From sequence record MW879344.1: a DNA stretch of 64,000 nt. One strand, written 5' to 3'. This document shows, in pieces, positions 2,451 to 17,744 of this stretch. Below the pieces are notes generated by a model, which was not told where the DNA came from, ran no database searches, and saw nothing but the letters and a program-made list of their open reading frames with translations. A program made the position numbers and the translations under genes. The stretch's first letter is position 1; each line of letters begins with the position of its first letter.

Positions 2451-2470
2451 TATCACGGCGTAACGCAAAA

Positions 2471-2490
2471 GGGGGCTAGTTAGCCCCCTA
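2471..2490 (+). terminator. GC-rich hairpin after the first gene
   Basis: GGGGGCTA-GT-TAGCCCCC; no clear U-run. Confidence 0.45.
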
Positions 2491-2562
2491 AGCCGTTCTA
2501 ACAGTACTGTAATGCAATCGGTTATAGTACTGTTAGAAACGCTTAAAACAGCGTACATTAAG

Positions 2563-2620
2563 GATTATCTGATAAATAAAAACGGTTGAAGTAATAACAA
2601 GCGTTTTTATAAGGATAATC
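2563..2620 (+). promoter_or_regulatory. SD-sequestering hairpin with late-promoter-like GATAAATA in the left arm
   Basis: GATTATCT/GGATAATC and TAAAAACG/CGTTTTTA stems; SD AAGGA at 2611-2615 partly paired. Confidence 0.5.
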
Positions 2621-2622
2621 AA

Positions 2623-3039
2623 ATGGGAAAACATTTATATAGGAAACCAGAACCCGCAAACGTTCAAGGCGTTTGCTGCGTAGAAGGTTGTAACAACTTA
2701 CAACAAGTAGTTAGAAAGGGCAAGTTTGGCCCATTGTGTTCACCTTGTGATCGTGCAAGGTACAACACAAAAGAAAAAGAGAAGTATGCAGGACTTACCA
2801 AATTATACGGACTAAGTAAAGAACAATATGATCTAATGTTGAGTGAGCAAAATCATTCTTGTTATATATGCGGTATAAAGGATATTGATTGCCCAAAATC
2901 AGTTTTACATGTAGATCATGATCACAGTACTGGAAAGATACGCGGTTTATTATGCCATCATTGCAATACTGGATTAGGACACTTTAAAGACAATGTAGAA
3001 CTGTTACAGAAAGCAATTGAGTACTTAAATCTTAATTGA
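2623..3039 (+). CDS. Endonuclease VII-family nuclease
   Basis: YGLSKEQYDLMLSEQNHSCYICG..LHVDHDHSTGKIRGLLCHHCNTGLGHFKDN: Zn-binding and His-Me motifs of the T4 gp49 family. Confidence 0.9.
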   Translation: MGKHLYRKPEPANVQGVCCVEGCNNLQQVVRKGKFGPLCSPCDRARYNTKEKEKYAGLTKLYGLSKEQYDLMLSEQNHSCYICGIKDIDCPKSVLHVDHDHSTGKIRGLLCHHCNTGLGHFKDNVELLQKAIEYLNLN

Positions 3040-3050
3040 GAGCGTAACAC

Positions 3051-3320
3051 ATGGAACTAAAACCAATTTCTGATCTGATTGATCGCAGTACTCGGATCGC
3101 CAGAACGATGACCGCCACCAGCCCGACAACATCGGTTTATAGTGGTTATCTGGCGTTTGTAGTTAATGGCGAATTAGTACAACGCAGGATCTACGATATG
3201 GCATATAATCATCTTTATGATTCTTGTATGTTCATAACTCACAAGAAAGTTAATTATGCCGTAAATCTTCCATGTAAGCCCCTTAGCGGTGCGTTTAACG
3301 CTGAATCACTAAAGGCATAA
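3051..3320 (+). CDS. Hypothetical protein
   Basis: ORF with SD-like GAG; followed by terminator 3331-3365. Confidence 0.6.
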   Translation: MELKPISDLIDRSTRIARTMTATSPTTSVYSGYLAFVVNGELVQRRIYDMAYNHLYDSCMFITHKKVNYAVNLPCKPLSGAFNAESLKA

Positions 3321-3330
3321 GGTAACATGT

Positions 3331-3365
3331 AAAACCGTGTAGGATCGTTCCTATGCGGTTTTTTT
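3331..3365 (+). terminator. Intrinsic terminator
   Basis: AAAACCGTGTAGGA/TCCTATGCGGTTTT + T-run. Confidence 0.7.
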
Positions 3366-3440
3366 ATTTGTCGAAAGTACTTGCAATAAGTTTTAAGTAC
3401 TGTAGAATATCCTATATCGAAACAACACGGAGTAAATGAA

Positions 3441-3665
3441 ATGAGATTAAGTAAACTGTTAGCGGAGTTGTCGAAGGTTGCAGAACTTGCGAAAGTACAC
3501 GGCAACAATGATCCCGATATTTCTTTTTGGCATGATGAAATTGAAACAATCGAACATTTAGAAGTATCATTCCCGCAAGATCTGGATGATGCCAGAATAC
3601 CGACTAAAGTACTATCGGCAACTGAGAAAGGAAACTTTTCATTTAGATTAGTACTACCAGAATAA
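3441..3665 (+). CDS. Hypothetical early protein
   Basis: SD GGAG; own promoter TTGCAA/TAGAAT 3381-3408. Confidence 0.75.
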   Translation: MRLSKLLAELSKVAELAKVHGNNDPDISFWHDEIETIEHLEVSFPQDLDDARIPTKVLSATEKGNFSFRLVLPE

Positions 3666-3723
3666 TCTTTACAAAAATGGGGTTGACAGCCAGCCCCAAA
3701 AAATGCAATAATATATACAAGCC

Positions 3724-3764
3724 AGAGAAATGGCGTAACCCACAGGGTGCAGAGATCCGTCCGT
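3724..3764 (+). repeat. Tripartite element, copy B
   Basis: AGAGAAAT..CCCACAGGGT..CCGT, 11 nt after TTGACA(3683)-18-AATAAT(3707-12). Confidence 0.8.
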
Positions 3765-3781
3765 AGAAAATTCAGTACTTA

Positions 3782-3822
3782 ATAGATATATCTCGGCACC
3801 CTCTAGGGTATCCGATTTCTCT
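3782..3822 (-). repeat. Tripartite element, copy B' (convergent with B)
   Basis: Minus strand AGAGAAAT..CCCTAGAGGGT..CTAT, 11 nt after TTGCTT-17-CATAAT. Confidence 0.8.
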
Positions 3823-3967
3823 CGTATGTAAGTATTATGCCAGTACTGAGAACATAAAGCAAGGGGTAAACGAAAATAAAAATTAAAATTCAAATGAAAA
3901 AAGTACTTGCATTAAGTTTTAAGTATTGTATACTTACCTTATCGAAACAAATGAAAGGATTTAAGAA

Positions 3968-4360
3968 ATGGAACGTAATGAGCAATTTAGATTAGTTCTT
4001 GAAGTACTGGAAAACATGCAAGCTTGTTTAGATGTTAATGATACATATGTGCGTATCAATGGCAAGAGTTTTAATCTTAATCGACATGCGGGGATCTGCT
4101 GGCATGTTCTCGCCTATACTCCTAATAGTGATTATTCAGGTATTGGGTTAGAATATCTTTCCCCGTTGTTTGTTAGTATGGGCTTACATCCTCATTATCC
4201 TGTAGAAATGCAGATCGTTAATGAGTTAGATCAAGCCCGTTGGATTCATTCAAAAGCAACAGATCAATATAATATCTTGGGCGAAGAAGGAAAGATCCGC
4301 CGTAAACTTTTAAAGGATTTGATTCAGTACTATAAAAAAGAGCTTGCAATTGAATCGTAA
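3968..4360 (+). CDS. Hypothetical early protein
   Basis: SD AAGGA; own promoter at ~3908-3935. Confidence 0.75.
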   Translation: MERNEQFRLVLEVLENMQACLDVNDTYVRINGKSFNLNRHAGICWHVLAYTPNSDYSGIGLEYLSPLFVSMGLHPHYPVEMQIVNELDQARWIHSKATDQYNILGEEGKIRRKLLKDLIQYYKKELAIES

Positions 4361-4399
4361 TACTGTATAATCTTTTATATCGAAACGGGAGATATAATC

Positions 4400-4855
4400 A
4401 TGAATAGCAAACAATTTCAAGATGCAACAAGAGAAGCCTTTTTGAAGTACTTCCCAAATGGCTACATTGGTATTTCTAAATTGTCAATTGGTGGCGGTTG
4501 TGGTATCTTCTGCGGGTTGATTGGTGACATTAATGATGTGGGCGGGAAGATCCGCATGAATGACCCAATGACAGTACGGGCATTCATTCATGATAATTTT
4601 TCATTCAATGACGAAACAACTGATTTAGAAAATGTTGTTATCGAATTCGATGGATCTTGGATCTCAGTACTTCCAGACAATCCACACAATTATTGTCAAT
4701 CTCACAAGGTGCCTAGTCGCAAGATTAACGCGGAGCCGTCAAAGGCATTAATTAATCTAGATAAGTACTTTAAACGCTTAAAGGATAGTGTAACCGAACA
4801 AGCTGGATTGAATCGTATTATTCAGCAAGAAAAGATCCCCGCAAAATATCTATAA
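4400..4855 (+). CDS. Hypothetical early protein
   Basis: SD GGGAG; own promoter. Confidence 0.8.
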   Translation: MNSKQFQDATREAFLKYFPNGYIGISKLSIGGGCGIFCGLIGDINDVGGKIRMNDPMTVRAFIHDNFSFNDETTDLENVVIEFDGSWISVLPDNPHNYCQSHKVPSRKINAEPSKALINLDKYFKRLKDSVTEQAGLNRIIQQEKIPAKYL

Positions 4856-4867
4856 TATATTGTCAAA

Positions 4868-4901
4868 AGTACTTGCATTAAAGTAGCGAGTACTTTACAA
4901 T
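4868..4901 (+). promoter_or_regulatory. Representative AGTACT-flanked sigma70 promoter
   Basis: AGTACT(4868)-TTGCAT(4873)-17-TACAAT(4896) with a second AGTACT at 4889; same layout at 3376, 5864, 7725, 8213, 11116, 13861, 16281. Confidence 0.75.
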
Positions 4902-4930
4902 AAGTTATCGTTAAGTGAGAGGATAAAAAA

Positions 4931-5065
4931 ATGTCAAAGATTGAAGCTTACAGAGCTGGACTGTATATGTTTACAGTACCGCCAGTAATAACCAACGCAT
5001 GGAAAGAAGTTGATTGGATCAATTTTATTGATTCTAATGGTAAATGGATGGTTCCTGTAGTATAA
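4931..5065 (+). CDS. Small hypothetical protein (44 aa, not in ORF track)
   Basis: SD GAGGA, MSKIEAYRAG...WMVPVV. Confidence 0.55.
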   Translation: MSKIEAYRAGLYMFTVPPVITNAWKEVDWINFIDSNGKWMVPVV

Positions 5066-5085
5066 TTTTAATTGAGGGTTTTACT

Positions 5086-5490
5086 ATGTTTTTACATGTA
5101 CGTGGTTTTGCTGGTGGCGGTTTCTGCTTTATGATTGATGATAAAGCGGTATCAGTACAAGAAGCATTGATCCAGAATGGTGGACGTTTCCACAAGGCAA
5201 CAATAAACGCATTGAACAGAAAGAACCTTTTTAATGAGTCAGATTTAAAAGCCTTTGAAGTACTGGCAGAATCATTACATAAAGGTTTAACGCCTTGCTC
5301 CATTCGTCAAATCCTGCGTAATGATTACGGGATCGACGTGTTAAAAACTGATTACCTTATGTTATCATCTTCTCAGGTTGAAGATCTTAAAACGGTTTAT
5401 AAGTACGCACGTTATAAGGTTCCTACGGGTTACGTATTGAAACATTCGCCAATGTACTACTTTTACAGGTATTTGAGCAACGTAAAATAA
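5086..5490 (+). CDS. Hypothetical early protein
   Basis: SD GAGGG before MFLHVRG. Confidence 0.75.
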   Translation: MFLHVRGFAGGGFCFMIDDKAVSVQEALIQNGGRFHKATINALNRKNLFNESDLKAFEVLAESLHKGLTPCSIRQILRNDYGIDVLKTDYLMLSSSQVEDLKTVYKYARYKVPTGYVLKHSPMYYFYRYLSNVK

Positions 5491-5495
5491 TTTAA

Positions 5496-5533
5496 AAAAG
5501 GGGTTGACTTCGGTCAGCCCTTTGTAGTACTAT
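5496..5533 (+). promoter_or_regulatory. Terminator-promoter cassette (PeSL-like)
   Basis: GGGGTTGAC-TTCG-GTCAGCCC-TTT hairpin containing -35 TTGACT(5504), -10 TACTAT(5528). Confidence 0.7.
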
Positions 5534-5544
5534 AGTATCACTCC

Positions 5545-5586
5545 AGCGAAATGGACTAACCCTATAGGGTGTAGTACTGTACCTAT
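5545..5586 (+). repeat. Tripartite element, copy C
   Basis: AGCGAAATGGACTAACCCTATAGGGT..CTAT, 11 nt after -10. Confidence 0.85.
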
Positions 5587-5679
5587 AATAAAAATAATTA
5601 AAATTCAAATGAAAAAGTACTTGCATTACGTATTGAGTCATGTATAATCATTATATCGAAAGCAAACGAGGATTTAACG

Positions 5680-5856
5680 ATGGATCATTTAATCGCATTA
5701 CTTAATGCCTTTTGTATTAAACATGGGTTAGTACCTGCTAGTGCCGATGAAATGCTAATCGAGTATTTGGGTACTGAAAATCCAGATCCTGCAATTGTTT
5801 CATGGTTACAAGCTTATATTGTACTGTGGGACTGTACAAGTGATTTAGGTTTATAA
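5680..5856 (+). CDS. Small hypothetical protein (58 aa, not in ORF track)
   Basis: SD GAGGA, own promoter; MDHLIALLN... Confidence 0.6.
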   Translation: MDHLIALLNAFCIKHGLVPASADEMLIEYLGTENPDPAIVSWLQAYIVLWDCTSDLGL

Positions 5857-5928
5857 TTAAAATAGTACTTGCAATAATATGTGAGTACTGTATAATTCTT
5901 TATATCGAAAACAAACGAGGATTTTTAA

Positions 5929-6357
5929 ATGAGAACATGTAAAGAGTGTGGTAATGATTGCAAGTTAGATGTAAATGAAATCGTTAACCATTATAACGAA
6001 GATGGGAAGATTGATTTTGATTTAGATGCGGATCATGTTGCAATTCCTGAATTAACCGACGCCGAAAGTAATATGCAAAATCCAGTACTACAAACGGCAT
6101 TCAATTTTTCCGGTGATGTACCTTGCATTAACTACGGGTTCAATTCTGGCGGTTATGAAAAATTCCAGTACTTTATTTGTGCTGATGGTGGTTGTTTAGG
6201 GATCGGGACTGTAATTAATGAGTTCCATAAAGTGAACTTTAATGATCCTGATGATAAGCAATGGTATATCGTAGGGGTTGAAGTTAATTACGAAAATACC
6301 GAACTGGTAGACGATCACACAGGGGATTACATACCAGCAGCATACAGCGAAAACTAA
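5929..6357 (+). CDS. Hypothetical early protein
   Basis: SD GAGGA; own promoter 5869-5896. Confidence 0.75.
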   Translation: MRTCKECGNDCKLDVNEIVNHYNEDGKIDFDLDADHVAIPELTDAESNMQNPVLQTAFNFSGDVPCINYGFNSGGYEKFQYFICADGGCLGIGTVINEFHKVNFNDPDDKQWYIVGVEVNYENTELVDDHTGDYIPAAYSEN

Positions 6358-6397
6358 ACAAAAGCAAAGGGGATCTATGATCCCCTTTTGAGGTTAT

Positions 6398-6661
6398 ATG
6401 AATTTACATTATTGTACCAGAAAATTAGTTGTTGCTTTTGATTGTAGTTCTGATAAAATACATTGTGTAATATACAGAAAGGGAACACCACGCACAGATC
6501 ACTGGAAAGTACTGCAATCCTATACAATGCAACGTAAAGGGTTTAAGCACCTTGATAGCAGGACACAAAAGGCATGTTTACGGCAAGTACTTAAAGTTAT
6601 GCGTAATCGTATTACACAGGCGTTACATGTTGCATTAACTACCAAGGATATGATAGAATGA
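6398..6661 (+). CDS. Hypothetical basic protein
   Basis: SD GAGG. Confidence 0.65.
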   Translation: MNLHYCTRKLVVAFDCSSDKIHCVIYRKGTPRTDHWKVLQSYTMQRKGFKHLDSRTQKACLRQVLKVMRNRITQALHVALTTKDMIE

Positions 6662-6825
6662 AATATGTAATCTATTATGATCGCAGTACTAAAAGCTGGT
6701 GGGGGTACTGGATTGATGAAAATGAAAATCAGTTAGGTGAAGCTGTTTTTGAATATCAAAAAGAAGATTGCCTGATACTCTTAGGAGAAGTCAAGGAAAA
6801 TCGTCGGAATTTAATTCAAAAATAA
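6658..6825 (+). CDS. Small hypothetical protein (55 aa, not in ORF track)
   Basis: ATGA overlap with upstream stop; MKYVIYYDRSTKSWWGYW. Confidence 0.55.
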   Translation: MKYVIYYDRSTKSWWGYWIDENENQLGEAVFEYQKEDCLILLGEVKENRRNLIQK

Positions 6826-6878
6826 ATGAAAAAAGTACTTGCATTCATGTGAGTACTTTTATATAATACTTACATCGA

Positions 6879-6920
6879 AGCGAAATTCGAATTGCCCACA
6901 GGGTGCGGAAGTATATCTAT
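6879..6920 (+). repeat. Tripartite element, copy D
   Basis: AGCGAAAT..CCCACAGGGT..CTAT, 11 nt after TTGCAT-17-TATAAT(6862-67). Confidence 0.85.
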
Positions 6921-7090
6921 AAAAAAGAATTAAAATTTAAATGAAAAAGTACTTGCATTAGATCGTGGATATGGTATTATAACTACATCGAAAGGCACTA
7001 AGGAAACAAATATGAAACGCTGGCATGAAGTACTGTTGTTCGTTTTGTTTATTCTGGTAACTTGTGTAAATTTTAATTGAGAGGTTCAAA

Positions 7091-7330
7091 ATGTCTTTAT
7101 ATAAAGTAGTAGTGAACTGTATTAGTGTTGGTATGGCTGGATCTCATACTCTGTTAGTATCTGGTGACTTCCCGCATATTAACGAGGCAAGAATAGGGAT
7201 CAATGAGTGGGCGGCTAATGAGTACGCCGGACGCTTAGATGTTAACGTAACATTTTTGAATCATTCAGATCAAATTTATGTTACTGATTTGAAATCATCA
7301 GATTATGATAAAGTTATTATAATGCGTTAA
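7091..7330 (+). CDS. Hypothetical protein
   Basis: SD GAGG. Confidence 0.7.
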   Translation: MSLYKVVVNCISVGMAGSHTLLVSGDFPHINEARIGINEWAANEYAGRLDVNVTFLNHSDQIYVTDLKSSDYDKVIIMR

Positions 7331-7432
7331 CTATATTATCAAAAGTACTGGACAAATCAACATCATTAGAGTATCATCTTTGTATCGAAGAAGATTGGTA
7401 TTGTTAATTAACTTTTAAGTGAGATATAATTA

Positions 7433-7711
7433 ATGAAAGCATACGAACATAAGACCATGACAGTTGCGGATCTTATTGCTAAACTGGAAAGTACTTATCC
7501 GAACAAAAACGCCGTTATCGTTGCGGATCTATGGGACGAAGACGATATTCGTGAAGTAGCACAGGATATTAATATTCAGCTCGACCGCGAAGAATGTCGA
7601 GTAGTAGCGGCTTATCTGGATGATACCGCAGATAAGACCAATGGTTATAATGATGATAACATTAAGTTAGCCATTTATCAAGTTATCAATTTGGGACTTA
7701 TTAATCCTTAA
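7433..7711 (+). CDS. Hypothetical protein
   Basis: SD GAGA; own promoter. Confidence 0.7.
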   Translation: MKAYEHKTMTVADLIAKLESTYPNKNAVIVADLWDEDDIREVAQDINIQLDREECRVVAAYLDDTADKTNGYNDDNIKLAIYQVINLGLINP

Positions 7712-7801
7712 CTATATTATCAAAAGTACTTGCAAATAGAAAGCGAGTACTTTATAATGAAGTTATTGAATCGGTACTTATTAACTAAGAGGAAGTATAT
7801 C

Positions 7802-8002
7802 ATGGCTCAAAAAGATCGTCGTTACTCAGTACAGGGTGAATTCACCGGAGCACCAAAGAAAGAGTTTGTTATTCGTTTCTGTGGTACGTTCGTTTCTGCT
7901 CATGCCACCCGCGATCTGGCTGATAAAGAAGTTGCCCGCCGCAAAGCTGAAATGGATACCCCGATGGTTAAATCGTCATGGTCAACAGTGGAGGCGGTAT
8001 AA
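7802..8002 (+). CDS. Hypothetical early protein
   Basis: SD GAGG before MAQKDRR; promoter 7730-7758. Confidence 0.75.
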   Translation: MAQKDRRYSVQGEFTGAPKKEFVIRFCGTFVSAHATRDLADKEVARRKAEMDTPMVKSSWSTVEAV

Positions 8003-8202
8003 TGTCAGTTGCTAAACACGCTACACGTGAATATAGCATTCACGACAAAGACACATCAGCATCAGACAATGGTTTATCACTGATCCGTGTTATTGAGTTA
8101 GTACCGGATCTGTCTAATGATGAATTGTGTAGCATCGTTGATCTGGAAGTGACAACCTCAATTGATATTAGTACTAATATCATTGTCATTCGCACGAAGT
8201 AA
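8002..8202 (+). CDS. Hypothetical protein
   Basis: TAATG coupling, SD GGAGG. Confidence 0.7.
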   Translation: MSVAKHATREYSIHDKDTSASDNGLSLIRVIELVPDLSNDELCSIVDLEVTTSIDISTNIIVIRTK

Positions 8203-8276
8203 ATTGATTAAAAGTACTTGCTTATTACTGGCGAGTACTTTATAATGGTTACACTATTAAGCGAGAGGATAACAAA

Positions 8277-8576
8277 ATGAAATTTACAGTACAAGTCGAA
8301 GGGGTTGATCTAGTATCAGTCGTCGCAGCATTACAAGAAGCCGCTAGACTTATCGAAGATGGGAATACTTCTGGATTTGATCGTAATGAAGATGGGAATT
8401 TTTATTTTGTAGAAGGCGATCAGCACTTGTTTAGTACTGGTGAATCATGTACAATGCATACAGCCGTTTGTGAAATGGTGGAGCGTTTACATCAAGGCAA
8501 TCATTATGATAATGATGAAGAACGGCAAGCTGATATTGATGTGATGAATAAATTACAAAAAGTAACAGGACGCTAA
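8277..8576 (+). CDS. Hypothetical early protein
   Basis: SD GAGGA; promoter 8218-8246; terminator AGTACTGG/CCAGTACT+T after. Confidence 0.75.
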   Translation: MKFTVQVEGVDLVSVVAALQEAARLIEDGNTSGFDRNEDGNFYFVEGDQHLFSTGESCTMHTAVCEMVERLHQGNHYDNDEERQADIDVMNKLQKVTGR

Positions 8577-8631
8577 ACAACAAGTACTGGTGAAATATCC
8601 AGTACTGTTTTTATATACAGCTTATTCTTTA

Positions 8632-8673
8632 ATAGATACATTTTCGCACCCTGTGGGTCAAAGACATTTCGCT
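8632..8673 (-). repeat. Tripartite element, copy E
   Basis: Minus strand AGCGAAAT..CCCACAGGGT..CTAT, 12 nt after TTGACA(8709-14)-17-TATTAT. Confidence 0.85.
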
Positions 8674-8802
8674 GTCTATGAAGTAATAATACAGTACTTT
8701 GGTAATGGTGTCAAGGATTAAATTAAAATTAAAACGAAAAAAAGCACTTGTAATTATCATGTAGTACTGTATAATCTTTTATATCGAAACGGGAGAATTG
8801 AA

Positions 8803-9105
8803 ATGAGATTTATCAAATACAGTTTGATAGGGTATTTTGGTATGGCATTACTTTGTACCGTACTTGTTATATGCATTACCGTATTAGATTATTTCGATGG
8901 TGATTTTTACGTTAAGTATATCTATGGTGGTTCACATTTCCGTTATGTAATTGAATTTGCATTACCTGCGATATTTAAAAGTAGCTTTTGGGGCGTACCG
9001 TGTGCTATACTGATAGCATGGAAAGTTGATCGTATCAAGGCGAATGATATGCATAACAATAGTATTAAAGAGCATTTTGGTATTGACTACCCTAAGAAGG
9101 ATTGA
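8803..9105 (+). CDS. Hypothetical membrane protein
   Basis: SD GGGAG; hydrophobic segments. Confidence 0.7.
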   Translation: MRFIKYSLIGYFGMALLCTVLVICITVLDYFDGDFYVKYIYGGSHFRYVIEFALPAIFKSSFWGVPCAILIAWKVDRIKANDMHNNSIKEHFGIDYPKKD

Positions 9106-9109
9106 TATA

Positions 9110-9355
9110 ATGAGTACCACATTGAAAGCACTGGTGTCATTATTATTCTCAGTACTGTTAACATTCTTATTGTTAACGGAGGCAAGAGATGGTATTGTAT
9201 GGCGGCTAACAATGTTAGCATATGAAATTGAAGATACTTGGTATTCTTTCTTGACATATGGTAGCAATGGGGTGTATGCTATATTTCTAGCTGGTATACT
9301 TTACATTTTATTTTGTTTAATGTTTGCTATGATGGGAGATAGTCATGAGAGTTGA
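9110..9355 (+). CDS. Hypothetical membrane protein
   Basis: SD AAGGA before MSTTLK; two hydrophobic helices. Confidence 0.65.
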   Translation: MSTTLKALVSLLFSVLLTFLLLTEARDGIVWRLTMLAYEIEDTWYSFLTYGSNGVYAIFLAGILYILFCLMFAMMGDSHES

Positions 9356-9385
9356 GCCAATCAGTAGAATTATTAAGTTAGCAAG

Positions 9386-9432
9386 TAGTACTGTCAAGAA
9401 TGAATATCCAAAAAATATTGTTGACAGTACTA
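9386..9432. promoter_or_regulatory. 12-bp inverted repeat carrying back-to-back TTGACA boxes
   Basis: TAGTACTGTCAA(9386-97)/TTGACAGTACTA(9421-32). Confidence 0.55.
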
Positions 9433-9509
9433 GCAGTACTGTGGTACATTTAGGTCAAGCAACAACGGGTTGCTATGATAAACGTGGTTTAATAAAATGA
9501 GGATTGAAA

Positions 9510-10367
9510 ATGGGTAAGCATATTTTTTGGGGTTGTTTAGGTCTGATTGGTTTACTCGCCATTGGTGCGTTGTTGGGTTCGTTCTATACGGTAGACCAAC
9601 AGGATCGCGGTGTAGTACTGACTAACGGTAAAATTACAGAAATTGCCGAGCCTGGTCTGAACTGGAAAAAGCCATTCGTTACATCGGTGATTGAAATTCC
9701 GGTAACTGGTCAGAACAAAAGTTATCCGAACCTTAAAGCGTACAGTCGCGATCAGCAGCCAGCAGATATGTCGGTTTCCGTATCGTTCGCCGTTCCAGCG
9801 GGTAAAGTGGGGGATCTGTATAGTACTTTCGGGACTATCGAAAACCTTACAGCACGTGTAATTGACCGTCAAGTACCGCAAGCAGTTGAAAACGTATTTG
9901 GTCAGTTTAACGCGATTACCGCCGTACAGGATCGTAATAAGTTAGTAACTAACTTAAACATTGCAATTAAAAAGGCGATGGAAAACTATCCAGTAATTAT
10001 TGAATCGGTACAGGTTGAAAACTTATCATTCAGCCCTGCATATGAAAAATCAATTGAAGAACGTATGCAAGCCGAGATTGCAGTAACTAAACGTGAGCAG
10101 GACTTTGCACAGGCTAAGATCTCTGCGTCAATCACGGTAGCCAACGCACAGGCCGAAGCTGATAGCCAGCTTGCTAAGGCAACAGCAGCAGCGAAAGCGA
10201 CACGCCTACAGGGTGAAGCTGATGCAGCAGCAATTAAGGCGAAGTCTGACGCACTTAGCAATAATCCGCAACTCGTACAGTTGGCAGCAGTTGACAAGTG
10301 GGATGGTGTACTACCTACGCAAATGGTTCCAGGTTCTACCGTTCCATTCGTGAATCTCAACAAGTAA
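9510..10367 (+). CDS. SPFH/band 7/prohibitin-family membrane protein
   Basis: N-terminal TM; YTVDQQDRGVVLTNGK..EPGLNWKKPF; coiled coil; LSNNPQLVQLAAVDKWDGVLP. Confidence 0.9.
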   Translation: MGKHIFWGCLGLIGLLAIGALLGSFYTVDQQDRGVVLTNGKITEIAEPGLNWKKPFVTSVIEIPVTGQNKSYPNLKAYSRDQQPADMSVSVSFAVPAGKVGDLYSTFGTIENLTARVIDRQVPQAVENVFGQFNAITAVQDRNKLVTNLNIAIKKAMENYPVIIESVQVENLSFSPAYEKSIEERMQAEIAVTKREQDFAQAKISASITVANAQAEADSQLAKATAAAKATRLQGEADAAAIKAKSDALSNNPQLVQLAAVDKWDGVLPTQMVPGSTVPFVNLNK

Positions 10368-10380
10368 TTGTATCACAAAA

Positions 10381-10405
10381 AGCCTCGCAAAGTCGAGGCT
10401 TTTTT
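10381..10405 (+). terminator. Intrinsic terminator
   Basis: AGCCTCG/CGAGGCT + T5. Confidence 0.75.
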
Positions 10406-10499
10406 ATTATGAACACAATTAAAATTCAAATGTAAAAGTACTTGTATTATATGGCTTATGCTGTTATAGTACTTATATCGAAGCACAGGAGATAATCAA

Positions 10500-10679
10500 A
10501 TGGAAGAACTATTGGAGTACTGGAAACGGTTTAGTAATGTACCAGTTAATAACAATGACGAGATAGAAGAAAGTTTCTTGCATTTTGATATTGGTACTGA
10601 TAGAATAGATGTGTGGCAATGGTTCGAAGCACAACATTCTGATTTTAATATATCAAAACTTTTAAGTGGAGAAGTATAA
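10500..10679 (+). CDS. Small hypothetical protein (59 aa, not in ORF track)
   Basis: SD AGGAG; IEESFLHFDIGTDRIDVWQWFE. Confidence 0.65.
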   Translation: MEELLEYWKRFSNVPVNNNDEIEESFLHFDIGTDRIDVWQWFEAQHSDFNISKLLSGEV

Positions 10680-11104
10680 TGAAAGTACTTTATATTAGTC
10701 AAGCCCCACAAGAAGTACAGAAAGCTTTTGGGCATGTACGGGCGTTGTTTCCTGATGTAAGTCAAGTACTTTATGATCAGGATTGTCGCTGGTGCTATGA
10801 AGGGGAAAACAATTACTTCCCTGATTTCGACACAAAAGAAGTTGATACAAATATACTTGAATCCGGTGCTGATTCACAGTATAATATTGAAGTACCAGTA
10901 CTTTACAAGATGTTTAAAGAAGTGCTGGTGGCTAAGTGTGAAGTACCAGATAAACCAACGGTAACACTTACACAGATCGACCATGATTTGTGGGAAGTAA
11001 ATGTAGGCGTGGCTGCACATACATGGGAAACTTTAGAATCTGGTTTAGCAGAATTTAAAGATTCGATTAATGAATATCAATTAAAAATTCCACGTTCTAT
11101 GTAA
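10679..11104 (+). CDS. Hypothetical protein
   Basis: TAATG coupling. Confidence 0.75.
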   Translation: MKVLYISQAPQEVQKAFGHVRALFPDVSQVLYDQDCRWCYEGENNYFPDFDTKEVDTNILESGADSQYNIEVPVLYKMFKEVLVAKCEVPDKPTVTLTQIDHDLWEVNVGVAAHTWETLESGLAEFKDSINEYQLKIPRSM

Positions 11105-11180
11105 TTATTACCAAAAGTACTTGACAGAAATTATCGAGTACTTTATAATAATCACATCAACCACACAAGAGGCACTAAAA

Positions 11181-11501
11181 ATGGAAAAGACAGTATATTG
11201 CGGCACAAGAACACTGGCACGTGAAGCAGCAAAAGAACTCAACGGCAAATTTAAAGATATGGGCAAAGATGCTCCATATGGTGAACGTTGGGTAGTACTG
11301 ATTGAAGTTCCAGACGTTCAAGAAGAAGTACATACTCAATTCGTTGATACTCTGCCAGAAGATGCAGTACGTGTACTGAATCAACCAACAGGCTTTAAAG
11401 GTGAACAGACGTTGAAGACTTCCAATAACAAGCCTGTACGGGTGTTGTGGCGTCGTTCTAAAGTTACTATGCGACTAGCCGCACATCTGGCGAAAGCTTA
11501 A
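11181..11501 (+). CDS. Hypothetical early protein
   Basis: SD GAGG before MEKTVYCG; promoter TTGACA(11121)-17-TATAAT. Confidence 0.8.
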   Translation: MEKTVYCGTRTLAREAAKELNGKFKDMGKDAPYGERWVVLIEVPDVQEEVHTQFVDTLPEDAVRVLNQPTGFKGEQTLKTSNNKPVRVLWRRSKVTMRLAAHLAKA

Positions 11502-11553
11502 CAGTAACCGATTGGGGGCGTTATATGCCCCCTTAATTAAGTGAGTACACTAC

Positions 11554-11796
11554 ATGAAAAAGGTTCAAGTAGATAGTACACAATTACGAATACATTTCAA
11601 GGCACAAACAAAAGTACTTGACAAAGCTATTCGTGTTGTGAAAGAATACAACACTGGTAAAGTAAGGCCAAGACGATTAGGGTGTGGATTGTTTTCAGTA
11701 CTGGATGTTTCCCGTAACGAGCGAATCGTTATTAAAGATAACACACTGAATCTAATGACGCATGAACAATATAATAAATTCGTTGAACGCCGTTGA
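11554..11796 (+). CDS. Small basic protein, possibly ParE/RelE-like fold
   Basis: RRLG..SVLDVSRNERIV..LMTHEQYN pattern; family call weak. Confidence 0.5.
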   Translation: MKKVQVDSTQLRIHFKAQTKVLDKAIRVVKEYNTGKVRPRRLGCGLFSVLDVSRNERIVIKDNTLNLMTHEQYNKFVERR

Positions 11797-11848
11797 CATA
11801 ATCCCCTAAATACGTATATAATAACTTATACGATTAGGGGATTTTATT

Positions 11849-12316
11849 ATGCCTGGAAAATTCAGATCCAAGAGTGGTGCTACACTAGCAGGACACTCTG
11901 ATAAATGGAGCGATGAGAATCGTTCAGCAAGTAGCCATGAAGCGGGGCAAGGCAGTAAAGGCAGTCGCAATCAAGGTACTGGCATTCAAGGAAAAATTAA
12001 CGCAATGCCATCACAGGGAATAGATACTTCCCGCATGGATAAATCAGAAAAGCTAAAGTACTTTAATTCATTAGGGTTACTACAGCCAGAACAAAAGCAA
12101 GAACTTTCTATAAAAACATGGCCTGATACTTTACGTAAAGTATTCAAAGACGAGCCAGTATATATCAAAGACATTACAGCCGCTTTAAAATCAGTACCGC
12201 AAGCAAACTACCCGCAAGCAGTACAAGCAGGATTCAACGCCACACAAGAGACAATGAATCAAACCGATGATGTTTATGACATATACGCCGCTATCATGCA
12301 AGCCATTCAGGGTTAA
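11849..12316 (+). CDS. Hypothetical protein with Gly/Ser/basic N-terminus
   Basis: SD AGGGGA inside hairpin AATCCCCTAA(11800-09)/TTAGGGGATT(11834-43); internal promoter TTGACA-18-TATAAT. Confidence 0.75.
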   Translation: MPGKFRSKSGATLAGHSDKWSDENRSASSHEAGQGSKGSRNQGTGIQGKINAMPSQGIDTSRMDKSEKLKYFNSLGLLQPEQKQELSIKTWPDTLRKVFKDEPVYIKDITAALKSVPQANYPQAVQAGFNATQETMNQTDDVYDIYAAIMQAIQG

Positions 12317-12384
12317 AAAAAAAGGGTTGACTTAGGTCAGCCCTTTTGCTATTGTATCAGTACTTAAACAAAAGGAACAAAATC

Positions 12385-12735
12385 ATGAGAAAACTTCTTT
12401 TAGCTACATTACTCTTTGCTGGTGCTGTAAACGCACAAACTTATGTTTGCAACACTTACACCGTATATCAGGGTGTTGGGAATGGTCAGTACAATAAAAT
12501 TGATAACAGTACGCCATCATTCAGTACTATCATCGAAACATCACGCGATGTAATTAAAGTGTATGTTAAAGGTGAAGAAAGTACGTATACCGAATTCTGG
12601 AAAGATTACAATGATTATCGTAATGATACCGGATTGATTAAACAGTCTGGTAATGAATTCGAAATCAAAACAGCGATTGAAGATCCTACAGGAACCGCAT
12701 ACATTCCAGTAAAAATAGAATACCATTGCAAATAA
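12385..12735 (+). CDS. Hypothetical exported protein
   Basis: SD AAGGA; signal peptide MRKLLLATLLFAGAVNA. Confidence 0.75.
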   Translation: MRKLLLATLLFAGAVNAQTYVCNTYTVYQGVGNGQYNKIDNSTPSFSTIIETSRDVIKVYVKGEESTYTEFWKDYNDYRNDTGLIKQSGNEFEIKTAIEDPTGTAYIPVKIEYHCK

Positions 12736-12788
12736 TTAAAATAAAGACTTGACTCGTTCAGGTCTTTTTTGTATACTATATTCAATCC

Positions 12789-12830
12789 AGCGAAATGGAC
12801 TAACCCTATAGGGTACATAAATGTATCTAT
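12789..12830 (+). repeat. Tripartite element, copy F
   Basis: AGCGAAATGGACTAACCCTATAGGGT..CTAT, 11 nt after TTGACT-17-TATACT. Confidence 0.85.
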
Positions 12831-12990
12831 TAGATATAGTACTGGATGTTTGTACAGTACTAAAAGAATTTAAAAATAAGATGAAAAAGTCCTTGCATTA
12901 AAATACAGATTTGCTATTATAACTACATCGAGAGGCGGCAATCTCTTGGTAAACAAACTTTAAAACATTTTAATTGAGAGAGAAATAAAC

Positions 12991-13323
12991 ATGGCTAACT
13001 TCAACGCACAGAACAAAGTAGATCGTACTCCTGCTCACACTTTAGAAGTAGGTACAATCGTAGTACACAACTACACTACATTCTGTCATGGTACTATTAC
13101 TGGCTATGCTCCAGATGGTGCTTACCATGTTTATTTCCCTACTGATATGGCACCTAACATGCCTAAGTATCAAGCTAACACAGTAGAAGCCACGCAAAAC
13201 CGTACCCGTACATTGACGGCTGGATCTGGTTTCTTTGTAAGCAAACACAAGTCATTCGCGTCTATTCGTGAACTACAACGCAAGTACCGCCAGAAAGGTG
13301 CTGCACTGGAAATGTTAGCATAA
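12991..13323 (+). CDS. Hypothetical early protein
   Basis: SD GAGAG; highly-expressed codon usage. Confidence 0.8.
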   Translation: MANFNAQNKVDRTPAHTLEVGTIVVHNYTTFCHGTITGYAPDGAYHVYFPTDMAPNMPKYQANTVEATQNRTRTLTAGSGFFVSKHKSFASIRELQRKYRQKGAALEMLA

Positions 13324-13395
13324 CAAATTAAAAAGGGGTTGACAATGTTCAGCCCCTTTGTTATAGTATTAGTACTTAAACGAGAGGATAACAAT

Positions 13396-13617
13396 ATGTT
13401 TACTGCATTAGAATCTTTGGTTAGAGAAGAAGTTTCGGAAGAAGAAGTAAAAGCAGGTTTAAAACTGCGTGATCTTTGCATCCAGAATGATCTGGATATT
13501 CCCGAAGTACTAATGACGTTGCATTACTTCAATGGTATTGAACCAAAATTAATCATTGACAAAGTATCAGCGTTAAACACGCCGTTACTTGAAAATGCAA
13601 TGCATGTACTGCATTAA
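13396..13617 (+). CDS. Hypothetical protein
   Basis: SD GAGGA before MFTALES. Confidence 0.7.
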   Translation: MFTALESLVREEVSEEEVKAGLKLRDLCIQNDLDIPEVLMTLHYFNGIEPKLIIDKVSALNTPLLENAMHVLH

Positions 13618-13789
13618 TGAAAACTATTATTAATGCAATCATTCTATCATTTATAATGATACTAGTACAACGTCAAACATCCTTCCCACTGCTTTGTATT
13701 ATAGCAGTACTGACAGGATTGTTAATTTATAAATGGTAAAAATAAAGGCTTGACACGTTCAAGCCTTTTTGTTATAGTACTATCAATCC

Positions 13790-13831
13790 AGCGAAATGGA
13801 CTAACCCTATAGGGTGTATAAATGTATCTAT
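13790..13831 (+). repeat. Tripartite element, copy G
   Basis: Identical 26-nt core, 11 nt after TTGACA-17-TATAGT. Confidence 0.85.
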
Positions 13832-13946
13832 AATAAAATAATTAAAATTTAAATGAAAAAAGTACTTGCAATAAGTTTTAAGTACTGTATAATGTTTTAC
13901 ATAGGGTAAGCAATACCGCTTACCCATATTAAGTGAGAGAATCAAA

Positions 13947-14522
13947 ATGAAATTTACTGAACTGAATGCTGAACAACAAGCTAGAGCAATTGAAGTACAT
14001 CGTGATATTAACGTAGATTATCAAGAATGGAATGATTTTGTTAAAGAAGAACATCATTCTAAACTTGAATTAGTTGGGTTCGATGGTGTAGAATCTGCTT
14101 ATTCTGGTTTTTGGTCACAAGGTGACGGTGCTAGTTTTACGGCTAGTTCATTAGATATTGAAAAGTTTTTACGTTCACAAAAACGCTGGACTTACTATCG
14201 TCCATTGCATGAAATGATTCGCATTAACGAATTGTGGGTTAAAGTTGTTCGTACTACACATCATTATTGTCACGAAAATACTACACAAGCAGAATTACAT
14301 GGTGAGCATTACATTGACTTAACTCCACGTCAAGAAAAATTATATGAAGAACTGGAAAAGGAAATAGATGCATATATAACTAATGCAGGTCAAGAATACT
14401 ATCGTGCTCTGAACAATGAATATAATGATCTAGTTTCAGATGAACAAGTCAAGGAAACAATAATAGCTAATGAAATGGAATTTGAAGAAGATCCACGCGA
14501 AAGCTGCGTAACTTATATCTAA
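13947..14522 (+). CDS. Hypothetical acidic early protein
   Basis: SD GAGAG; SGFWSQGDGASF motif. Confidence 0.8.
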   Translation: MKFTELNAEQQARAIEVHRDINVDYQEWNDFVKEEHHSKLELVGFDGVESAYSGFWSQGDGASFTASSLDIEKFLRSQKRWTYYRPLHEMIRINELWVKVVRTTHHYCHENTTQAELHGEHYIDLTPRQEKLYEELEKEIDAYITNAGQEYYRALNNEYNDLVSDEQVKETIIANEMEFEEDPRESCVTYI

Positions 14523-14860
14523 ATTCAAAATAGGGATTGACAAGTTCAATCCCTTTTGATACTATATCAGTACTGAAACGGAGTTATATGAAAAAGAAAT
14601 ATATAGTTCTGTACAGTACTTTAAACGAAGCTTACATTCAAGGCCAAAAAATGGAACGCATTGTTCAAGTACTGATTGTTATTTTATTCATTTTGTACTG
14701 GATACTGTAATGCGAATAATCAAGTACTACAATGGTGTAAGTATTAAAATGATTGATACCGATCATTTTGTAGTACAGAAAGGCCGTATAAAAATTACTT
14801 GCAAACGTGCCGTAATTGCATTATACTATTTCTATCAACTAATCATTAAGTGAGAAGAAA

Positions 14861-15196
14861 ATGAGAAAACCAAACGTAGAATTACTTTGCGATTCACATC
14901 ATGGCGTTTACATTCCGCAAATTATGATCCATCGTCTTAAAGACAATGGTTGGCGTAATATCCCACTTAATGCCGTGGAAGTACTTTCGCATCCAGATAA
15001 TGAAGATTATTGGGATACATGGAATCAAGTACTTGACAATGCTGAATGGCATGATGAATACACTACACAAGTCTTTAAGCTACATCATGATGGTGACTTG
15101 TGGGCGTATTGTGAAGCGTCAATGTCGCCTACAGAGTATCATAACATGTTCGGTGAATATCCTGAATGGTTCAATGAAGAACTCGAAGAAGCTTAA
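14861..15196 (+). CDS. Hypothetical acidic early protein
   Basis: SD-like GAGAAG; HHGVYIPQ..YWDTW..LHHDGDLW. Confidence 0.8.
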   Translation: MRKPNVELLCDSHHGVYIPQIMIHRLKDNGWRNIPLNAVEVLSHPDNEDYWDTWNQVLDNAEWHDEYTTQVFKLHHDGDLWAYCEASMSPTEYHNMFGEYPEWFNEELEEA

Positions 15197-15254
15197 AAGA
15201 ATTACAAAAAGTACTTGACTACGGTCAGGTACTTTGTTATAGTTATATTACTCC

Positions 15255-15296
15255 AGCGAAATGGACTAACCCTATAGGGTACAGTACTGTACCTAT
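15255..15296 (+). repeat. Tripartite element, copy H
   Basis: Identical core, 11 nt after TTGACT-17-TATAGT; flanks nearly identical to copy C for ~60 bp. Confidence 0.85.
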
Positions 15297-15408
15297 AATA
15301 AAAATAATTAAAAATTTAAATGAAAAAGTCCTTGCACAATAGAATACAGTCGGTATAATAGATACATAGGTTAAGGGAATGGCTCTTAACCAGATAGGAG
15401 TACTGAAA

Positions 15409-15807
15409 ATGACTTATACCAAAACCCCAGAACAGCAACTGTTGGATGATGCAATCAGAGCTGATCAGAAAACAGAAGTTGAAAAACGTATTGCAATTGA
15501 GCGTAAAATACTTCGGTTTGTGTTCAAGTATGTAATAAAATCCGGTATGTCAGTTTCTTGTTTTGATGGTGAAGAATGGTATTTGAAACGCTGTACTAAA
15601 ATCAATACTATCATGGAAGAAATCCAATCGGTTGATGAAGAAAGTTTCCGTTTCCGTAAAGAAGATGGCACTATCTTTGGCGGCATTGTATGCATTTATG
15701 GTAATGGTAATTATGGCTATGATGTAATCTCTGATAGTACTTACAATGATGAATTCAATGAATGGTATAAACCAATTGATGAGTACATTGATGGTCTTCA
15801 AAAATAA
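15409..15807 (+). CDS. Hypothetical early protein
   Basis: SD AGGAG before MTYTKTPEQ. Confidence 0.75.
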   Translation: MTYTKTPEQQLLDDAIRADQKTEVEKRIAIERKILRFVFKYVIKSGMSVSCFDGEEWYLKRCTKINTIMEEIQSVDEESFRFRKEDGTIFGGIVCIYGNGNYGYDVISDSTYNDEFNEWYKPIDEYIDGLQK

Positions 15808-15861
15808 TTAAAAATAGGGGTTGACGAGAATCAGCCCTTTTTGCTATAATAATTCCAATGA

Positions 15862-15903
15862 AGCGAAATTCTCTAACCCTATAGGGTGCGGAAGTGTATC
15901 TAT
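15862..15903 (+). repeat. Tripartite element, copy I
   Basis: AGCGAAATTCTCTAACCCTATAGGGT..CTAT, 11 nt after TATAAT(15845-50). Confidence 0.85.
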
Positions 15904-16024
15904 ATCTTTTAGTACTGTATATCTGTACAGCAAAAATAAATTAAAAATAAGATGAAAAACAGCTTGCAATGTAATGCTGGTGGATGTATTATATCTATAT
16001 CGAAACAGCAACGGGGTACAAGAA

Positions 16025-16264
16025 ATGGCTAATAAAGAATTTGAATTTAAAGTTAGAAAATGGTCAGATACTAATGCTAGACCATTTGATGTAGTACTGT
16101 TGGACTATCTCAAAAACAATCAGCATTATCAACCTAACGTTGAATTCAGTACTGAAGCCTTAGCCAATCAACATTTGGTTTCGTTGCAAAATTCAGTACT
16201 TAACAATCCTGATAGTGTTAACTTTATTCGTGATCATTGGCCTGTTGATGGCGGCATCGAATAA
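16025..16264 (+). CDS. Hypothetical protein
   Basis: SD GGGG before MANKEF. Confidence 0.7.
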   Translation: MANKEFEFKVRKWSDTNARPFDVVLLDYLKNNQHYQPNVEFSTEALANQHLVSLQNSVLNNPDSVNFIRDHWPVDGGIE

Positions 16265-16347
16265 AAATTTAAACGTAAAAAGTACTTGACTACATCAGTT
16301 GAGTACTTTAAAATAGAATCTTAATCAACGCAATAGGAAACGAAATC

Positions 16348-17241
16348 ATGAAAATGTACAAAGGTATCGCAGGTAAAGCAATCAAAGAAAACCGTCCACT
16401 GCTAAGATCAGAACTGGAACTGGTTGTTCCTTCTATCTTTTCAAGTACTGGACACGAATCACGTTCAGCACGGTTCGCACCTGTTGCAACAATTGACGTT
16501 GTTGACCGCTTAGCAAAGGAAGGTTATCAACCATTCTTTGCGATTCAGTCAAATGTACGCGACGAATCTAAACGTGAATTTACTAAACATATGCTGCGTT
16601 TCCGTCAGCATGATGGTAAAACATCCGGCGAATCTAATGAGATCATTCTCGTTAACGCCAACGATGGCACAAGTGCCTATCAATTGATGGCTGGTCAATT
16701 CCGTTTCGTTTGTGCTAATGGTCTAGTTATGGGCAACATGAAGCATAACACAAAGATCTATCACAAAGGTAACAACATCATGGATGACGTTATCGAGGGC
16801 GTTTACACTGTAGTAAAAGACTTTGATAACATCGAACGTTACAAACATGAAATGCAACGTATCCAGCTTAATGATGTAGAGCGTAAGACATTCGCCACCG
16901 CTGGCTACCTCATGAAAGAAGGTTTGCCAGAAAGTGGTTCACTGGATGACGCTGTTTATAACCCATTACAGTTGTTATCACGCAATGGCCTGAACAGCCT
17001 TGACCAGTACGATAACAGCTTATACAGTACTTTTAACACTGTACAGCAGCACTTAATTAACGGCGGTCAACGCTCATTCATGGAAGATCGTAACGGTCGT
17101 ACCCGCCGCCGTTCAAGCCGTGGAGTTACTAATATCAATAAGAACATTGACATTAATAGTAACTTATGGCAACTCGCTACTGCACTGGTAGAAAAGAATA
17201 CTAAGGTTGTGCATGATATTGTTGACGCACAATTATCATAA
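16348..17241 (+). CDS. DUF932/DUF945-family phage/plasmid protein
   Basis: PSIF..H.SRS.RF..V.T..V...L.KEGYQPF...S.VRD..KR.FTKHMLRFR; EIILVNANDGTSAYQLMAG.FRFVCANG. Confidence 0.85.
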   Translation: MKMYKGIAGKAIKENRPLLRSELELVVPSIFSSTGHESRSARFAPVATIDVVDRLAKEGYQPFFAIQSNVRDESKREFTKHMLRFRQHDGKTSGESNEIILVNANDGTSAYQLMAGQFRFVCANGLVMGNMKHNTKIYHKGNNIMDDVIEGVYTVVKDFDNIERYKHEMQRIQLNDVERKTFATAGYLMKEGLPESGSLDDAVYNPLQLLSRNGLNSLDQYDNSLYSTFNTVQQHLINGGQRSFMEDRNGRTRRRSSRGVTNINKNIDINSNLWQLATALVEKNTKVVHDIVDAQLS

Positions 17242-17262
17242 TAATTAAGTACTAAAATCATG

Positions 17263-17313
17263 TAAGGGGTTGACACTTGTCAGCCCCTTTTGCTATACTT
17301 CTTTTACACCAAC
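17263..17313 (+). repeat. 51-bp duplicated terminator-promoter cassette, copy 1
   Basis: 49/51 identical to 17681-17731; differs only in the hairpin loop. Confidence 0.85.
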
Positions 17314-17329
17314 CGGAAAGGAAAAACAA

Positions 17330-17677
17330 ATGTTAGATGTATACGTAAGATCAGATTTAGTTTCAAATGGTCGCAATGAGTTCGGTACTGAACAAGAAAA
17401 AACAGAGTACTATATCATTGCTGAATCATCAAGCGGTCAACGTATTAGATTAGATAGTGTATCAATTGTTAATAGAGAATACACTGATTCACAATGTACT
17501 GAGTACTTAGAACGTATCGTTACTAAAATTAAAAATCATTTAGCTGGTGGCGGAAAATTAAATCTAGATTACTGGTACGAAATTGATCCTTGCTATGGTT
17601 CACAACGTTACATTGATTTAGATAGTACTGGTTACTTCTATAAGCGTGAGAAACGCGAAGATTCTTATAAAAATTAA
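17330..17677 (+). CDS. Hypothetical protein
   Basis: SD AAGGA before MLDVYV. Confidence 0.75.
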   Translation: MLDVYVRSDLVSNGRNEFGTEQEKTEYYIIAESSSGQRIRLDSVSIVNREYTDSQCTEYLERIVTKIKNHLAGGGKLNLDYWYEIDPCYGSQRYIDLDSTGYFYKREKREDSYKN

Positions 17678-17680
17678 TAC

Positions 17681-17731: not shown

Positions 17732-17744
17732 AAAGGAAAGTATT

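Follow-up and report, generated by a model that had tools for sequence, protein, structure and literature searches.

Paired AGTACT sites at predicted early promoters of a jumbo phage: candidate operators tied to a genome-wide palindrome

Introduction

Phage T4 starts from strong early promoters with UP elements, read by host sigma70, and then moves to a middle class which lacks a normal -35 box and carries an extended -10 box. There, recognition of the -35 box is blocked on the protein side, by AsiA acting on region 4 of sigma. In phage SPO1, the protein TF1, a member of the HU family that recognizes hydroxymethyluracil DNA, prefers phage to host DNA, has binding sites in early promoters and is an inhibitor of early transcription. 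A third arrangement is seen in the YefM-YoeB operator, where paired TGTACA palindromes overlap the promoter and a toxin of the RelE/ParE superfamily serves as corepressor (PMC1802561). Here, we analyze pairs of the palindrome AGTACT in bases 1–64000 of Erwinia phage pEa_SNUABM_49 (MW879344.1, 358,049 bp; pEa49 for short), a stretch that we call the window. We show that these pairs hold fixed positions in predicted early promoters, that the arrangement is restricted to the early class and conserved, and that AGTACT itself is under selection; we propose that the sites may be operators.

pEa49 is a jumbo phage of the genus Eneladusvirus, with Erwinia amylovora as host. Its close kin are Serratia phage BF and Yersinia phage fHe-Yen9-04 (Yen904), with CBB, GAP32 and XbC2 (Mimasvirus) and RaK2 (Alcyoneusvirus) further off. 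The first ~20 kb of pEa49, referred to below as the early region, can be aligned to the 22-kb direct terminal repeat of CBB, and promoters in the corresponding part of CBB have been predicted to be RpoD-like, with an UP-like element (PMC5259590). Our literature search found no paper mentioning AGTACT in these phages. A preliminary description of the window had pointed to paired AGTACT sites as a class-wide shut-off switch, worked either by a dimeric repressor or by methylation. We compare promoter positions and site spacings across four genomes: pEa49, fHe-Yen9-04, CBB and RaK2.

Results

Eight AGTACT-N14/15-AGTACT pairs are present, all at the coordinates given in the preliminary description, and their placement relative to the promoter hexamers is also as described there. 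In every pair, the last T of site 1 doubles as the first T of the -35 box (TTGCAA, TTGACA, TTGCTT or TTGACT), and site 2 is followed, after a gap of one nucleotide, by a TAnnnT -10 box. Site 1 therefore spans -40 to -35 and site 2 spans -19 to -14. The sites are 20 bp apart in the pairs at 3376, 5864 and 13861, where the promoter spacer is 16 bp, and 21 bp apart in those at 4868, 7725, 8213, 11116 and 16281, where it is 17 bp; since each site is locked to its own hexamer, the distance between sites follows the spacer. With centers two helical turns apart, both sites lie on one face of the helix. The eight promoters match the sigma70 -35/-10 consensus at 9–12 of 12 positions and, by these features, are predicted to be early promoters of the RpoD type, read by the host factor.

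The same layout is found across the clade. At sigma70-like promoters of the four genomes, the top positions of AGTACT are 5 nt before the start of the -35 box and 7 nt before the start of the -10 box, and 20 and 21 bp are the sole over-represented short distances between AGTACT sites (74 pairs versus ~24 expected). In the early cluster of RaK2 (225–243 kb), the layout occurs in ~20 promoters, in sequence that cannot be aligned with that of pEa49. Orthologous dual-site promoters have identical bases at 56/56 positions of site 1 and 58/59 of site 2, compared to 59/95 (62%) in the middle of the spacer, 39/49 in the rest of the -35 box and 56/60 in the -10 box. Hence the sites are conserved above neighboring DNA (98–100% versus 62% for the spacer), and they have the fixed spacing and the contact with promoter hexamers that characterize paired-palindrome operators. 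At promoter 3376, for example, both sites are intact in the Yen904 and CBB orthologues despite an altered spacer. A scan of IMG/VR for the dual-site pattern gave ~60 single matches, consistent with chance for 16 specified bases; contigs with several dual-site promoters all belong to the ~350-kb jumbo clade or are >100 kb.

AGTACT is not confined to promoters. No hexamer is more frequent, whether in the window (282 copies versus 18 expected) or in the whole genome (1065 copies versus ~98 expected, an ~11-fold excess), a fact that the preliminary description had overlooked. Its density is 6.4/kb in the first 20 kb and 2.8/kb elsewhere in the genome. Given the amino-acid sequence and codon usage, 115, 14 and 62 copies would be expected in the three reading frames, versus the 464, 131 and 329 found, and Ser-Thr and Val-Leu dipeptides are also inflated; the excess is not a codon effect. 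Similar numbers are seen in relatives: 1008 copies in fHe-Yen9-04, 1235 in CBB, 1114 in Kaldavass, 1105 in XbC2, 1011 in GAP32 and 937 in RaK2. The octamer AAGTACTT shows no enrichment in PA5oct, Atu_ph07 or XacN1. Sites are kept more often than hexamers in general, both in comparison to fHe-Yen9-04 (65% versus 39%) and in comparison to CBB (56% versus 28%). Relative to RaK2 they have turned over (19% versus 15.5% kept), with the total count maintained. Over short evolutionary distances, single AGTACT sites are under purifying selection. AGTACT thus has the hallmarks of a highly iterated palindrome, being the commonest word, independent of frame, and kept in number despite turnover. Such frame-independent, genome-wide selection argues that something reads AGTACT.

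The sequence context of the palindrome is also biased. A G directly 5′ of AGTACT is depleted to 6–7%, and RaK2 favors the longer palindrome TTCAGTACTGAA. Twenty-eight of the 64 palindromic hexamers, as well as the tetramer GCGC, have zero copies in the 358 kb of pEa49, and GCGC is likewise missing from fHe-Yen9-04, CBB and RaK2. Restriction-type sites have been purged to an extreme degree, with AGTACT as the one exception.

Can this background account for the promoter pairs? Shuffled sequences lead one to expect 0.03 pairs in the window, a null that is too lenient because AGTACT itself is so abundant. The real density of sites puts the expectation at 2.5 pairs for the window (Poisson P=0.004 for the eight found) and at 1.6 pairs for the first 20 kb (P=0.0003). 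The preliminary description had stated that its switch would fall if background enrichment explained the frequency of the sites; that background proves to be real, and it does not explain the fixed positions and the pairing. A stronger argument than pair counts comes from the fixed positions, the conservation throughout the clade and the purifying selection.

A subtler version of the same idea is that a genome-wide drive toward AGTACT fills whatever positions are free, such as flanks and stems, and that the resulting layout was then spread by duplication of promoter cassettes. In line with this, AGTACT is enriched everywhere and in all frames, and it is found in terminator stems as well (e.g., 8583–8606). 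Long upstream blocks common to early promoters suggest common descent. There is also a third, rarer position, in which AGTACT overlaps the -10 box as TATAGTACT, an inexpensive way to gain a site. This overlap is seen, for example, at 10468–10473, and three of the four genomes have 4–7 cases each. Nevertheless, only two of >12 possible positions are used by the pairs, and site 2, having no letter in common with the -10 box, is no such inexpensive choice. RaK2 has kept the layout amid unalignable sequence, the sites are better conserved than the -35 box itself, and middle and late promoters lack them. Density speaks against a general filling of free DNA, too. Non-coding DNA has 3.8 AGTACT/kb versus 2.9 in coding DNA, and ~2.9 by our arithmetic once promoter sites are subtracted, so that intergenic DNA outside promoters is on a par with coding DNA. 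The 20 early promoter windows, at 41 sites/kb versus 6.4/kb for the early region and 2.8/kb elsewhere, are ~14 times richer than coding DNA. We consider a by-product origin unlikely, while ranking it above the other alternatives to operator function that we discuss below for the promoter sites.

The contrast with later promoter classes bears on how the sites might work. Middle promoters are marked by a TGAAACG box together with an extended -10 box (TGGTATAAT), and none of 10 middle-type promoters in pEa49 has AGTACT within 60 bp. Late TATAAATA promoters show no AGTACT at a fixed position. Site 2 of the early promoters sits exactly where the middle class has the TG of its extended -10 box. A sigma70-family factor is encoded at genome position 332177–333166, beyond the window, and is conserved from pEa49 to RaK2 (33% identity). 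This factor is a likely reader of the middle class. As a reader of AGTACT it was rejected, for it is conserved but fails to explain the spread of the palindrome through coding DNA.

One could also imagine that the sites simply strengthen early promoters by offering host RNA polymerase extra contacts, site 1 as an extended -35 or UP-proximal element and site 2 as a spacer element. Early promoters of T4 carry extra conserved positions, and Estrem et al. reportedly derived the consensus AAAAAARNR for the proximal UP subsite. That consensus is matched by the A-tract and AGTA that precede the -35 box in these promoters, and the CBB promoters have been described as RpoD-like with an UP-like element (PMC5259590). 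On the other hand, two distinct modules of polymerase are not expected to favor one 6-bp palindrome in common. In the UP consensus, the positions of GTAC are unconstrained, site 2 displaces the TG which middle promoters use, and the genome-wide excess is left unexplained. This makes a pure polymerase-contact role distinctly improbable.

All eight dual-site promoters are on the + strand. The 20-bp class begins with promoter 3376–3408 (site 1, 3376–3381; -35 box, 3381–3386; site 2, 3396–3401; -10 box TAGAAT, 3403–3408) and includes 5864–5896 (site 1, 5864–5869; site 2, 5884–5889; -10 box, 5891–5896) and 13861–13893 (site 1, 13861–13866; site 2, 13881–13886; -10 box, 13888–13893), the last with an UP-like upstream block. 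To the 21-bp class belong 4868–4901 (site 1, 4868–4873; -35 box, 4873–4878; site 2, 4889–4894; -10 box, 4896–4901), 7725–7758 (site 1, 7725–7730; site 2, 7746–7751; -10 box, 7753–7758) and 8213–8246 (site 1, 8213–8218; site 2, 8234–8239; -10 box, 8241–8246). The same class contains 11116–11149 (site 1, 11116–11121; site 2, 11137–11142), a perfect TTGACA-17-TATAAT promoter with a conserved gene pair downstream, and 16281–16314 (site 1, 16281–16286; site 2, 16302–16307; -10 box TAAAAT, 16309–16314).

Twelve more predicted early promoters on the + strand, within 1345–19500, have AGTACT fused to the -35 box only, with site 1 starting at 1345, 1475, 1690, 3902, 5616, 6834, 6948, 10437, 15210, 18327, 18637 and 19458. 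Several of these retain remnants with 1–2 mismatches where site 2 would sit. Two further elements had been proposed to accompany the pairs. A shared A/T-rich upstream block (AATTAAAATTYAAATG...) does exist, and among the eight pairs it is found at 13861 only; it mainly precedes site-1-only promoters (3902, 5616, 6948, 10437 and 18327). ATCGAA(A) near the start site follows promoters 3376 and 5864 of the 20-bp class and is absent after the 21-bp class. Near the start of the record, at 490–570, are two convergent promoter-like units in which AGTACT, at 500 (+) and 556 (-), stands one base before TATAAT. fHe-Yen9-04 has a matching convergent arrangement near its end.

The pair can also be drawn as two arms of a hairpin in + strand RNA, which would terminate read-through from upstream, or insulate against it, and would be fused to the next promoter. 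The preliminary description had noted a stem-loop followed by TTT, and this holds for the 21-bp class and fails for the 20-bp class. In the former, the arms extend to 11–13 bp, the mean fold energy is -13.6 kcal/mol in + strand RNA versus -9.6 in - strand RNA, the + strand has mismatches of the G-U type, changes in the arm go along with the -35 variant, and the stem is followed by a T-rich tail; at promoter 4868, whose complementary arms are extended in this way, the RNA fold is -13.4 kcal/mol. Neighboring promoters, moreover, embed TTGAC in genuine terminator hairpins (12320, 12743, 13744, 15208 and 15816). But promoters of RaK2 and of the 20-bp class keep both sites with arms of just 6 bp (-4 to -8 kcal/mol, no strand asymmetry), and hence a hairpin fails as a general explanation of the pair. 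A canonical terminator already stands just ahead of promoter 3376, and the predicted structures have a 9-nt loop and A/U-rich stems. A stable stem with a U-tract is thus found in the 21-bp class alone and not wherever the pair occurs. Fusion of terminator and promoter is plausible within that class; as an account of the pairs as a whole, termination is improbable, less so than the polymerase contacts considered above.

Hairpins of related design occur nearby. At 12320–12347, 12743–12767, 13744–13768, 15208–15235 and 15816–15839, terminator hairpins carry a TTGAC -35 element in the 5′ arm, and their T-tails run into a -10-like hexamer preceded by TG. They look like fused terminator-promoter units, and several have no gene close behind. 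Two AGTACT pairs are 18 bp apart (8583–8606 and 12838–12861). In the first, which lies just past a gene end, the two sites form the arms of a terminator-like hairpin (AGTACTGG...CCAGTACT, followed by a T-run), which means that AGTACT is also built into terminator stems. The arms of the second are partly complementary, and no T-run follows.

Finally, we considered the methylation version of the switch, in which a methyltransferase of the phage, expressed later, would methylate both sites and alter their recognition by sigma70. One candidate is a Dam-type N6-adenine methyltransferase (PF05869, similar to TIGR01712), encoded at 31082–31621 on the + strand. It represents the only methyltransferase family found in all five clade genomes tested, and its gene lies, also in favor of this reading, downstream of a middle-type promoter at 29836. 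That promoter (29836–29875; TGAAACG plus extended -10) precedes a coding gap at 29.9–30.5 kb. Enzymes of the TIGR01712-like family are known for GATC methylation in phages T1, HP1 and VT-2, which counts against this enzyme as a writer at AGTACT. A PF01555 N4/N6 methyltransferase (86969–87829), common to pEa49, fHe-Yen9-04 and CBB (three of the five genomes), was rejected as the writer given its absence from RaK2 and 121Q. Our searches turned up just these two DNA methyltransferase genes in pEa49. No C5 (PF00145) or D12-class (PF02086) methyltransferase was found there; the search for MT-A70 gave no matches, but its controls likewise gave none. Geometry is a further obstacle, in that the bases open to methylation, A and C at -37/-36 in site 1 and at -16/-15 in site 2, fall outside the hexamers read by sigma70. 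Nor does a modification target need 11-fold enrichment. This half of the preliminary proposal is therefore weak: a direct epigenetic switch is unlikely, and we rate methylation as the least probable of the explanations discussed here.

Discussion

We favor the view that the AGTACT sites are operators through which a putative factor that recognizes AGTACT keeps host RNA polymerase off the early class by occlusion, and would put the probability of this view at roughly 40%. Both the binding of a protein to the sites and the repressive outcome are inferred from sequence. The factor would read the palindrome throughout the phage genome. It is probably encoded by the phage and, as a 6-bp palindrome suggests, probably a symmetric dimer. 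At early promoters it would occupy -40 to -35 and -19 to -14, on one face of the DNA and two turns apart, where it might clash with sigma region 4 and the C-terminal domain of the alpha subunit (alpha-CTD) on one side and with polymerase contacts just upstream of the -10 box on the other. As the factor accumulates, the whole early class would be turned down. Occlusion is favored over activation since promoters with near-consensus -35/-10 boxes and an UP-like element should need no activator. The preliminary proposal is thus supported in part, in that its putative dimeric repressor gains conserved, selected and class-specific operator-like sites.

Several points weigh against operator function. 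Site 2 is found in only 8 of ~20 early promoters of pEa49. Promoters within one genome are in part paralogous copies, so that counts within a genome are not independent. We found no RNA sequencing runs containing pEa49 and no transcriptome paper for the clade, and both the promoters and their shut-off are predictions. The searches that we made found no reader of AGTACT. Among 30 early proteins, most of them without a known family, none has a DNA-binding Pfam domain. The HU (PF00216), AbrB/MazE and RHH_1 families are absent clade-wide; for PF00216, five clade genomes gave zero matches, with control genomes positive. The only annotated small helix-turn-helix regulator, CBB_511, was dismissed, being missing from pEa49, Yen904 and RaK2.

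Few early genes extend as far as RaK2; those that do encode the proteins at 3051–3320, 5929–6357, 11181–11501 with 11554–11796, 13947–14522, 17330–17677, 18025–18204 and 18721–19122. The protein encoded at 1785–2450, which the preliminary description had singled out, is confined to Eneladusvirus; since neither CBB nor RaK2 has a counterpart, this protein is ruled out as a reader for the whole clade. Its Pfam match is weak and sub-threshold. On the - strand, a 267-codon open frame (1755–2558) covers nearly all of this annotated + strand gene. Elsewhere in the early region, proteins with endonuclease VII (2623–3039), SPFH/Band-7 (9510–10367) and DUF932 (16348–17241) domains are encoded, and the remaining products are mostly small and family-less. 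We also rejected the SlmA site (GTGAGTACTCAC) as the basis of the palindrome: the flanks of AGTACT do not fit the GT and AC that it calls for, each genome has only 2–4 full sites, and 5′ G is depleted, as noted.

A conserved gene pair provides a lead. Directly behind the perfect-consensus dual-site promoter at 11116, a gene for a 106-aa protein (11181–11501) is followed by one for an 80-aa protein with a ParE-like toxin domain (11554–11796). The two are kept together in 11 clade loci, including those of RaK2 and 121Q, which is unusually stable for the fast-changing early region. The 106-aa protein combines an N-terminal domain of 43 aa, which is conserved, with a basic tail. It has no sequence match in Pfam or PDB and no usable match in the protein atlas, and a large protein search returned one homologue cluster only; its AlphaFold model (pLDDT 68.5) has no Foldseek match at E<=0.001. 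By analogy, this pair could be a YefM-YoeB-like reader, but for now it is only a lead.

It is also possible that one reader serves both the ~1000 sites and the early promoters. AGTACT would then be a sequence-encoded 'self' tag of an unmodified genome, used for protection, compaction or recruitment, with two placed sites turning the same protein into an early off-switch. We regard this broader idea as more doubtful than operator function as such, and as more probable than any of the alternatives weighed above. If it is correct, a virus with unmodified DNA could tell self from host and couple that distinction to transcription. Its early off-switch would amount to a DNA-side counterpart of T4 AsiA or SPO1 TF1 that does without base modification. 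A site pair locked to the -35 and -10 boxes in every genus tested is a concrete, mutable handle on the early switch, and the promoter pair is a natural bait for the factor behind the clade's most striking genome signature. RaK2-like jumbo phages include candidates for the control of fire blight and Klebsiella.

How does this architecture compare with known systems? It would represent a form of operator-in-promoter control that has no published description to our knowledge, one linked to a genome-wide palindrome. The published description of CBB promoters (PMC5259590) concerns the same promoters in a sister genus, and makes no mention of AGTACT, a second site or the genome-wide excess. YefM-YoeB, like Axe-Txe, shares with pEa49 a paired 6-bp palindrome with a GTAC core that overlaps the promoter hexamers. 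In YefM-YoeB, a small dimeric repressor reads the palindromes and occludes the promoter (PMC1802561); its phage counterpart is only proposed. The centers are 12 bp apart there versus 20–21 bp here, and a single autoregulated operon stands against a whole promoter class plus ~1000 further copies in the genome. Furthermore, no YefM/Phd-type protein was found in our searches, and the model of the protein encoded upstream of the ParE-like gene matches no known fold.

The phage systems offer functional parallels. The proposed factor would, like SPO1 TF1, prefer phage DNA and inhibit early promoters. The clade, however, has no HU-family gene, and the mark of 'self' would be a sequence word on unmodified DNA. 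pEa49 has two promoter classes that correspond to those of the T4 early-to-middle switch (AsiA/MotA, Alt/Mod); the difference is that the proposed block sits on the DNA in pEa49 and on sigma in T4. HIP1 (GCGATCGC) of cyanobacteria and other highly iterated palindromes offer a parallel for the palindrome itself: there, too, a short palindrome is the top word of the genome, independent of frame and maintained by selection amid site turnover, with no known reader. In pEa49, by contrast, the palindrome is viral, 6 bp long and set at fixed positions in one promoter class, within a genome from which 28 other palindromic hexamers and every GCGC have been purged.

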